Shown here piece after piece: positions 20,168-23,100 of a DNA stretch of 64,000 nt. Each line of letters begins with the position of its first letter. The first letter of the stretch is position 1. Origin of the DNA: Haliotis rubra (taxonomy: Eukaryota); contig NW_025765980.1 in assembly GCF_003918875.1 (NCBI RefSeq), forward strand, positions 1,240,001 to 1,304,000, read 5' to 3'. The translations under genes and the position numbers were made by a program. The notes under the pieces are model-generated. The model was not told where the DNA came from, did not search any database, and saw only the letters and a list, made by a program, of their open reading frames with translations.

Positions 20168-23100
20168 TTAGGAGTCTAGTCGCGCCAATTCACTGGTGTA
20201 TATGCCAATGCTCTCCATGTCATAGAGTACGAAGTAGATCTGCTTCAGCGAGCTCGTCATCACTGTCATGAAGTAGTTGCTGATAGCACGGAGGATGATC
20301 TGAGCTGCCGTCTGTTTCGGGAAGCCAGCACTAGGATGCAAGAACACATACAGTGAGAAGTAACGTATCTGTGGTTTGTGAGTGTAGCAGGACAACACAA
20401 AAGTCATGCATTCATATGAGGAGCTCTACAAGATGTTTTAGTTTTAGGTGAGGTGAAATTGGGTTTAATGTCGTGCTTGAGAATATTTCGCTCATATGAC
20501 GACGTGCATGCGTTTGTGTATGTGTGGCTGCTTGTACTAGCCCAGACGTAAGCTGGTTTTATAGTGCTAGCCTACTGAGATACCATGCCGCAGTGAAGCA
20601 TGGATACCCCACTCAGACACATTATACTGACTCCGAGCCGACCAGTCCTTGTTGTACCCATTAATGCCGAGCGCCAGGCAGGGACCAACAAGTACCATAT
20701 TTTAAGATCTTTTGGTATGACGCGGTCGGGGATCGAACCCGTGACCTTCCACTCTCCGGGCGGACGCTTTTTAGTTTTAGTGTCAGAACACTAGGACAAC
20801 TGGTAACTTTAGTGATAGATGTTAAATTTGACACTGTTTGCTTGCTGACAGTTTAACGCCACTCACAGCAATATTCCAGCTATATAATGGTGGTCTGAAT
20901 ATAATCAAGTCTGGACCAGACAATCCAGTGCTTTACATCATGGGCATCAAGCTACACAACTTGGATCAAATGGCAGGCATCAAGTATTGATTGATTTTTG
21001 TTGTTTTACGCCGCAGTCAGCAATATTCCAGCTATATGGCGACGGTCTGTAAATAATTGAGTCTGGACCACACAATCCAGTGATCAACATCATGAGCATT
21101 GTTTTACGCAATTGGGATACGATGACATGTCAACCAAGTCAGCAAGCCTTTCCGCCCAATCCCGTTTATCGCCTCTTACGACAAGCATGGGTTGCTGAAG
21201 AGAGATTCTGACCTGGATTTTCACGGGTCAGCATCAAGTAAGTTAGAGCCAAACCACATGATTCTATTTGTTGCCCTTTACAACAAATATAGTTGAATTC
21301 TAAACATAAGCATGATATAGTGGATCTTCACAGGAGAACTATTTTATTATGGCAAAGTCATAACTGTGAGTGAGCTATTAACAGCATGTCAGTTAAATCA
21401 TGAAATGTAATGAAAGTTCAATGTGGAAGAAAAGCTTGGAGGTATTAACTACTTTGGTAAAACCAAAAGACATGGGTGTGGTGCTGACAAAACAAGGAAT
21501 CAGAATCCAAGGTTATATGGGATACAATCCCATGATTACTGGATTCTGGCAAAGCTAAGGGAGGCAAATAAGCAACAATAAATTGACTGATAAATACATT
21601 TGCTTTAGGAAATGAAATTGTTTGATGTAAATGAGCAAAATGTAACCATGCAGCTGCAATGAAAAGAAATCTGTTCAGCTGTGATCAGTCAAAAAATCAA
21701 AAATAGCAAAAAAATATTTCCCATTGTCCTACATTGGAAGGTATTTGGAGAGACCATCGGCACTGACAGGTGTTTAAGGAGGCCAACATCAGAGGGTTTA
21801 GGAAGGCCAACAGCAGGCGGGGTCCAGAGAGGCTAACAGCAGAAAGGGTTCAGAGAGACCTACAGCAGGCATGATCCAGAGAGACCATCAACGTTTATTG
21901 AGTTCAGAGAGGCCAATAGTGGAAGGGATTTAGATAGGCCTTCTTAACATAATGTGTTCATTCCAGTCATCAGCAGAGTTATATTGTGAAAGTTCACCAC
22001 AAAGCCAGGATGTTCGGCAAGATAATCAATACCAGAATGATTTCAGGGATGTTTTGCACACAAGCAGGGCTAAAGTAGGTCACTTGCCATCATAGGGTGG
22101 TTTCAGAGATTTCATCATCATTAGGTGTTTGGGGAAGTCATCATCATTAGGTGTTCGGGAAGGTCATAATCATCAAAGTGGTTATGAGAGGTCATCAACA
22201 ACAGGTGTTCAGAGAGGTGTTAGTGCTTGCTAGGTACCAACCAATTAGTAGTTGTCCAAACACGTCATCAACATCAGAAAGGGATCAGATGAGAAGTTGT
22301 CTGCACCAGAAGGTAGGGGAGCGGCAGGTGTTAGTGCAAGTCAAGAACCAACTAAACAATGTTAACAGTCTACGCTACAGGTATAGGTAACGGATGTGCC
22401 TTACCGTCCACTTCCAACAGAAGGGAACGCCAGACTTTTCAGGTTTTTCTCATCAGCCAAAGTTAGACAGTTCTTGACTGCTTTTTCCAGCAATTGCTGC
22501 GGGTTATCCATTTTCCACGTGGGGCCGTTACAATGGATAACATACTTTGCTGGGAAGTGGAAGCCTTGACTGATCACAGCTGGACAAACAAACAACTAAA
22601 GTCAATCCATGTCAACAACACAACACAGACGGCAGCATCAAGTTCTGCAGCTGACTCTGGCATTGTCCATGGAGCGTAAACATCATGGATTACAATTTGG
22701 ATTCTCTATACCACCTCCAAGATGCAGAACTAGAGGCATTACCTGTGTTGAGTATTTCTAGGTTCACGTATAGACAATGACAACAGTGGTATGAAAAACC
22801 TATGGGTACCCAATAACAGTACTTTTCGATACCTGACATTAAATGACAAATCTCAAAAACAGGTTCTAAACATTGATTGCATCTCCAAGGATGGACTTTG
22901 TTCATATTGAGTTGAAGCATATGTCTCAATGGACATGTTATTATAAATTCTATGAAAAGATATATGATCTGAAGACAATGACATATTCAGTGCTGTGAGC
23001 ATCATCCACTGTTGTCAGCCTATAACACGACCAGTAACGGAAACTCACTTCCCACTCCCGATGGAAGGTATAGCTAAAGACTTGAGGTTTTTCTCATCAG

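Follow-up and report, generated by a model that had tools for sequence, protein, structure and literature searches.

Does the choice of a single exon decide how firmly a chromatin-bound histone holds adenosine diphosphate ribose (ADP-ribose)? The question is raised by a macroH2A gene of the abalone Haliotis rubra, located on the minus strand of a stretch of 64 000 nucleotides (nt) of genomic DNA (RefSeq assembly GCF_003918875.1, contig NW_025765980.1, positions 1 240 001 to 1 304 000). We refer to this whole stretch as the window and number it from its first letter. Eight coding exons of the gene were mapped, and exon 7 exists in two copies, exon 7A (A-type; 23049-23223) and exon 7B (B-type; 22405-22579), as alternatives to each other. 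According to our reading, which derives from sequence comparison and structural models, the choice between 7A and 7B may give two isoforms that are both of the ADP-ribose-binding type and show a graded difference in binding, in either direction. We assign this reading a probability of roughly 55%.

The two exons are homologous, arranged in tandem and of equal length (175 nt), and are separated by an intron of 469 nt (22580-23048). Both are entered in phase 1 and left in phase 2. The splice sites are ..tttcag (acceptor) and gtgagt (donor) for 7A, and ..gtccag and gtaagg for 7B. The exons are identical at 116 of 175 nt (66%) and at 40 of 59 amino acids (68%); 19 residues differ in Haliotis. Exon 7A contributes HVNSP (end of strand beta5), KNIL (a helix) and AIPSIGSG (a strand and the start of the diphosphate loop), whereas the 7B counterparts are HCNGP, KNCL and AFPSVGSG. 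In an initial annotation of this DNA, HVNSPSW of 7A had been set against HCNGPTW of 7B, which is correct on translation. The same annotation had claimed that a split codon leads to PSIGSG-N-AGFP with one exon and PSVGSG-R-AGFP with the other, and we could reproduce this by translating the reverse complement. The last bases of 7A are AA (23050-23049), following GGG, while those of 7B are CG (22406-22405), following GGA. Exon 8 (20168-20330, acceptor ..tcctag) reads T GCT GGC TTC CCG. Its first T (20330) completes the junction codon, which is AAT (Asn) for 7A and CGT (Arg) for 7B, and AGFP follows. In Haliotis numbering the Asn/Arg site is residue 331 and the Val/Cys site residue 289, corresponding to human residues 315 and 273, respectively; human numbering is used below. 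Joining 7A to 7B causes a frameshift with a stop 17 codons into 7B, and skipping of both exons leads to stops in exon 8. As 175 is not divisible by three, the frame is shifted in either case, which makes such transcripts non-productive.

Use of each exon was analysed with contigs of four sequencing runs (X1 and X2 from organism A, X5 from organism B, and X10), which were placed on window positions 19600-23290. In each of X1, X2 and X5, one contig of 234 nt falls on 23049-23224 (7A) and one on 22405-22580 (7B). The 28 and 30 terminal letters of these contigs do not belong to the adjacent intron, their match to the flanking exons 6 and 8 being deduced from length only. A length of 234 nt corresponds to 29 nt of exon 6, the 175 nt of the alternative exon and 30 nt of exon 8, and is the expected size for the arms of a bubble in an assembly with k = 31, because both exons begin with C and end in different bases. 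The contigs for exon 8 end exactly at 20330. These exon-exact ends argue that X1, X2 and X5 are RNA. Each of 7A and 7B is thus found singly in spliced transcripts, provided that the runs, which are guessed to be RNA, are indeed RNA. Rare forms, such as transcripts with both exons, would be dropped from contigs. The depths of the 7A and 7B contigs are similar in the three runs (6.85/6.1, 9.6/7.5 and 43.7/57 for X1, X2 and X5, respectively). Contigs of X10 extend into the introns and are uninformative on exon choice. The contigs of X1 and X2 covering the 3' untranslated region skip 33 bases (20030-20062), probably due to an indel polymorphism between individuals.

Both isoforms are already contained in RefSeq as automatic predictions. 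The eight-exon model with 7B translates to a protein 100% identical to XP_046566530.1, 'core histone macro-H2A.1-like isoform X1 [Haliotis rubra]'. Isoform pairs X1/X2 differing in exon 7 alone are found for four Haliotis species, among them H. rufescens, H. cracherodii and H. asinina, and for Liolophura, Lineus, Lingula, Pecten and Mya. A literature search, which included histone surveys of molluscs and annelids, found no description of macroH2A exon 7 isoforms in the papers covered. That 7A or 7B might be a dead copy was rejected, as both exons have good splice sites, exon-exact contigs and mostly synonymous changes.

The exon pair is old. We compared the genomic loci of Liolophura (chiton), Lineus (nemertean), Pecten (scallop), Lingula (brachiopod), H. 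rufescens and Capitella (annelid). All six have exon A followed by exon B and then by exon 8, with a length of 175 nt for A as well as for B, and with AA as the last bases of A and CG as those of B. The first base of exon 8 is T except in H. rufescens, where it is C and encodes the same amino acids. The conservation of this split codon (AA/CG/T or C) in six genomes of four phyla is far beyond chance, and the occurrence of the A/B pair in them indicates that the duplication is older than the divergence of molluscs, annelids, nemerteans and brachiopods. In the two outgroups sampled, Saccoglossus (hemichordate) and Priapulus (priapulid), the locus contains one copy of the exon. Between the window and H. 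rufescens, 7A shows 13 nt and one amino acid difference, and 7B eight nt and one amino acid difference; by this comparison both exons appear to be under purifying selection. Resolution is poor in a tree built from the 58-residue exon peptides, with 21 of 34 branches left open. The A and B exons of one species never pair in this tree, and a single clade is rejected neither for A (p-AU 0.195 in the approximately unbiased test) nor for B (0.44).

The duplicated exon has left traces in protein databases. When all representative proteins were searched with a profile of 7A and 7B, many fragments comprising one exon were recovered, with the ending GSG-K or GSG-R; the ending GSG-K arises because the final AA is read through into the donor gt. 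In Capitella teleta, there is an intact A exon with good splice sites (2612-2785 of the locus sequence), while the published gene model has only B. The models of Paralvinella and Saccostrea X3 (GSG-K-FVIH.. and GSG-N-CHMS..) apparently contain read-through of the A donor or misjoined exons, and look like annotation errors due to the duplicated exon.

To which residues does the choice amount? We compared the 59 positions of the exon column by column in seven lineages having both exons. Only two of the 59 columns are disjoint between the types: at residue 273, A-type exons have Val and B-type exons Cys, and at residue 315 they have Asn and Arg, respectively. Four further columns are nearly diagnostic, namely 294 (Ile/Val in A, Cys in B), 308 (Ile/Leu and Phe), 279 (Gly and Lys/Ser) and 275 (mostly Ser and mostly Gly). 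The perfect separation of the types by Asn and Arg across four phyla argues that this difference is under selection. Across animals, residues 273 and 315 are strongly associated, a hint that the diphosphate loop is structurally coupled to the end of beta5, or else of common ancestry.

In the 369-residue numbering of mammalian macroH2A1.1, the glycine of the GSG loop is Gly314 and the next residue Arg315, while Gly224 is located in GGEVG. G224E and G314E are the standard mutants abolishing the binding of poly(ADP-ribose) (PAR) (PMC5770377). Macrodomain reviews describe the element as the diphosphate-binding loop, the residues directly after the glycine shaping the position of the distal ribose (PMC7050489; bioRxiv 10.64898/2026.08.12.744356). 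The initial annotation had counted the differing residue, which comes after GSG, among those of the ligand pocket. A check of the numbering places it in the diphosphate-binding loop, directly following the equivalent of human Gly314.

As a structural check, the initial annotation had proposed an alignment of both modelled isoforms to the human and Capsaspora structures. The AlphaFold model of the 7B isoform was made from the window sequence, and that of the 7A isoform from H. asinina, with one conservative difference in the exon. The predicted local distance difference test score (pLDDT) is 92.8 for 7B and 93.0 for 7A, the predicted template modelling score (pTM) is 0.90 for both, and the secondary structure is the same. 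On superposition, the root-mean-square deviation of either model is about 0.9-1.0 Å from macroH2A1.1 crystal structures and 1.1-1.2 Å from the Capsaspora structure. The Asn/Arg site, residue 136 of the models, is situated in the loop between the strand 126-129 and the helix 141-158. The loop block 131-140 is the least confident part of both models (pLDDT 72 for B and 84 for A).

Exon choice might nevertheless act outside the ligand pocket, by way of an interaction surface, protein stability or a modification site, with Asn/Arg being a passenger or a surface residue. Many of the 19 residues that differ in Haliotis belong to the WG../WK.. loop or to the seven residues that open the exon, and the exchange of Asn for Arg alters the surface charge at the pocket rim. 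However, the surface positions vary inside each type. Perfect type specificity is confined to 273 and 315, and the positions coming next (294, 308, 275 and 279) are clustered around the diphosphate loop, beta5 and the helix that lies behind beta5. Among the alternatives this one survives best, and we still consider it unlikely.

Comparison with proven binders addresses the possibility that one isoform does not bind at all. In human macroH2A1.1 (3IID, with ADP-ribose) the sequence is HCNSP ... NCL ... AFPSIGSG-R-N-G-FPK, and in Capsaspora macroH2A (7NY6; 7NY7 with ADP-ribose) it is HVHSP ... NAL ... AFPSIGSG-N-N-H-FPK. The GSGR attributed to vertebrate macroH2A1 by the initial annotation is confirmed, and both Capsaspora structures carry GSG-N. 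The equivalents of D203 (QGDI), G224 (GGEVG) and F348 (YFVLYD) are encoded by constitutive exons, and that of G314 (GSG) is present in both 7A and 7B. The GGEVG region resembles macroH2A1.1 and not 1.2. By their content of binding residues, both isoforms would be classed as macroH2A1.1-like. Loss of binding in one of them seems unlikely, because both diagnostic states occur in macrodomains crystallized with ADP-ribose and because the equivalents of D203, G224, G314 and F348 are intact. A difference that is tunable rather than on/off, as the initial annotation had suggested, may thus be regarded as indirectly favoured.

An on/off switch has a precedent in vertebrate macroH2A1.1/1.2, where the alternative exon comprises residues 198-229 (PMC8301376) and its switch removes ADP-ribose binding (PMC8301376, PMC12551714). 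If one abalone isoform had lost binding in the same way, it would more probably be the B-type, which often combines Gly at human 275 with Arg. The B-type sequence is usually HCNGP, where both crystallized binders have Ser, and the lower pLDDT of the loop block in the B model points weakly in the same direction. On the other hand, human macroH2A1.1 with Cys273/Arg315 and Capsaspora macroH2A with Val/Asn both bind ADP-ribose, no known binding residue is affected in either isoform, and Gly275 is not universal among B-type exons, being replaced by Ser in Mya and Ruditapes. We regard such a switch as quite improbable. That the two exons are biochemically equivalent and are kept by separate splicing or expression programmes (regulatory subfunctionalization), which would fit the similar contig depth of the 7A and 7B arms in three runs, is very improbable, since synonymous changes far exceed replacements in each exon and interchangeable exons would not be expected to keep type-specific amino acids and a split codon in four phyla.

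For the graded difference in binding, we propose the following mechanism. A tandem duplication of exon 7 would have taken place in an ancestor of molluscs, annelids, nemerteans and brachiopods. Splicing would take either copy A or copy B, giving two histone isoforms with otherwise identical macrodomains. The copies differ in the half of the pocket that is made by strand beta5 and the diphosphate-binding loop (Val273/Asn315 in A, Cys/Arg in B). The isoforms might then be unequal in their affinity for ADP-ribose or PAR, in the kinetics of binding or in their preference among ligands. Such an effect would amount to graded tuning and not to a loss of binding, and splicing could set the strength with which chromatin-bound macroH2A engages ADP-ribosylated partners such as PARP1. 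Any effect of exon choice on PARP1 is an extrapolation.

Several points weigh against this mechanism. In a wider sample, some A-type exons have Ser or His at position 315 (Crassostrea, Patella, Lottia, Mercenaria), although almost never Arg. Contact of the side chain of residue 315 with the ligand is deduced from the position of this residue in the loop. Several differences between 7A and 7B are on the surface (N-terminal part of the exon and loop after W278), where another function is possible. Finally, the status of runs X1, X2 and X5 as RNA is a guess on record.

According to the initial annotation, an Asn-to-Arg change at this position was reportedly implicated in the lower ADP-ribose affinity of vertebrate as compared with protist macroH2A. 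The affinity of macroH2A1.1 is stated to have 'decreased during evolution' in a paper (PMC12551714) that came later from the laboratory of Guberovic et al. Arg after GSG is the commonest state in macroH2A of invertebrate bilaterians, being found in insects, sea urchins, Saccoglossus, amphioxus and every B-type exon. By itself, it is therefore no change of the vertebrate lineage. Work by Guberovic et al. from 2021 is reported to have placed its key substitutions on the vertebrate stem lineage. If they do lie there, other residues would be better candidates, for example Asn316, which is Ala or Gly in invertebrates. Among the macroH2A proteins collected, the residues at 273/315 are Cys-Arg in 58, Val-Asn in 34, Val-Arg in 17 and Cys-Asn in two.

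A more far-reaching version may be put forward tentatively, with the odds rather against it. Independently of vertebrates, the ancestor of molluscs, annelids, nemerteans and brachiopods could have built a splicing switch on the other wall of the pocket, in the diphosphate loop, which would by now have alternated for more than half a billion years between a Capsaspora-like Asn/Val state and a vertebrate-like Arg/Cys state that differ in ADP-ribose affinity. If true, these lineages would possess a two-setting chromatin brake on PARP and on the nuclear use of nicotinamide adenine dinucleotide (NAD+). MacroH2A1.1/1.2 is the textbook case of splicing control over metabolite binding by a histone and has so far been treated as a vertebrate feature; the abalone gene, whose independent alternative exon concerns the opposite pocket loop and is conserved in four invertebrate phyla, points to at least two origins of control over the macroH2A pocket by splicing. 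Val/Asn and Cys/Arg represent a natural pair of variants for dissecting the role of the diphosphate loop in ADP-ribose affinity, and with two isoforms of one gene the reason for the change of macroH2A affinity in evolution becomes testable. For abalone and oyster biology, the ratio of the two isoforms is a defined quantity that can be monitored during stress, development and ageing.

With regard to the selection of the exon, two mechanisms of mutual exclusion were considered. Steric hindrance was ruled out, as the intron of 469 nt between 7A and 7B is too long. Two inverted repeats are found around 7A, one of 22 nt with 86% complementarity (22958-22979/23359-23380) and one of 15 nt with 87% (23008-23022/23243-23257). 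We do not rely on them, since the pairing is not kept in H. rufescens: the first pair is without its core there, the second retains about 10 of 15 positions, and there are no compensatory changes.

The remaining exons complete a macroH2A histone variant, in which an H2A fold with H2A C-terminus is joined through a basic linker to a macro domain at the C-terminal end. Pfam domains Histone (PF00125), Histone_H2A_C (PF16211) and Macro (PF01661) were detected in both isoforms with E-values of 1e-12 to 4e-35. All exons are on the minus strand. The coding part of exon 1 (32711-32882, ATG at 32882) encodes the H2A N-terminus, exon 2 (31231-31337) the H2A fold, exon 3 (29259-29519) the H2A C-terminus and the lysine-rich linker, and exon 4 (28689-28784) the end of the linker and the start of the macrodomain. 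Exon 5 (26236-26326, 91 nt) is present as a single copy and contributes the D203 equivalent and the 1.1-like GGEVG loop. Exon 6 (24730-24819, 90 nt), which ends in phase 1 with ..GGGG before the donor gtaagt, is common to both isoforms. Exon 8 is the last coding exon and carries the stop codon TAA (20170-20168). Exon 5 has a GC-AG donor, ..GAAGTAG followed by gcaagt (26230-26236, minus strand), which is required for the sequence GGEVG-Q-AMEK as found in the RefSeq protein. A gene finder restricted to GT donors would consequently mis-join the exon of the GGEVG loop. Three runs of N in the window (29721-29861, 34715-34868 and 38051-38207) were left unchanged.

The introns flanking exon 6 contain minisatellites, one at 23397-24747 (about 1.3 kb, unit of 23 nt) and one at 24906-25650 (about 0.7 kb, unit of 75 nt, 96% identity). 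A repeat is also present at the place of the former in H. rufescens. Interspersed repeats at 19724-19847, 20468-20715 and 20964-21211, which occupy the 3' region and the intron separating 7B from exon 8, have summed contig depths of 10^4-10^5 in the four runs and are very abundant elements of the genome. No tRNA was detected by ARAGORN in the repeats adjoining exon 8. At 56830-57740, the minus strand has long open frames of repeats rich in Pro, Ser, Thr and Leu (GC content 0.50, GC skew +0.49), which we read as a simple-sequence region or a repetitive coding exon.

Among known systems, the macroH2A of Capsaspora owczarzaki resembles the A-type in having HV..SP and GSG-N, and shares the fold (template modelling score 0.95). 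Exon 7A scores above 7B against it (48.7 versus 41.0 bits), with identities of 47% for A and 44% for B; the known structures represent one sequence. It differs in the loop, which is N-N-H-FPK as compared with N-A-G-FPK in Haliotis, and in the Phe before PSIGSG, which it shares with the B-type and human proteins. Human macroH2A1.1 (1ZR3, 3IID) resembles the B-type, which has its Cys273, Cys294, Phe308 and Arg315, and here 7B scores above 7A (75 versus 62 bits). In contrast to Ser275 and Asn316 of the human protein, the B-type has Gly and Ala, and the human gene is without a second copy of the exon 7 equivalent. As a class, substitution events derived from tandem exon duplication, as described in two accounts (PMC9741552, PMC8373072), share with the abalone pair equal length and phase, homology, a frameshift on double inclusion and an ancient origin. 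No paper listing the macroH2A event among such substitutions was found by literature search.

The closest parallel is the vertebrate macroH2A1.1/1.2 switch. It concerns the same gene family and likewise uses tandem alternative exons within the macrodomain that alter residues lining the ADP-ribose pocket, so that a chromatin-bound histone owes its ligand-binding character to splicing, as is predicted for abalone. Homology of the two exon pairs was rejected, because exon 7 aligns to human residues 257-315 and not to 198-229. The vertebrate exon forms the side of the D203/G224 loop, whereas the abalone pair covers beta5 and the G314 loop on the opposite side of the pocket. The vertebrate-type exon is a single copy in abalone (exon 5), and the exon duplicated in abalone is single in vertebrates. 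The vertebrate switch abolishes binding, while both abalone isoforms keep every known binding residue, and the abalone-type pair would have originated in the mollusc/annelid/nemertean/brachiopod ancestor and not in vertebrates. To judge from these sequences, there have been two independent duplications in the macroH2A family, each of which appears to have put one wall of the pocket under the control of splicing.

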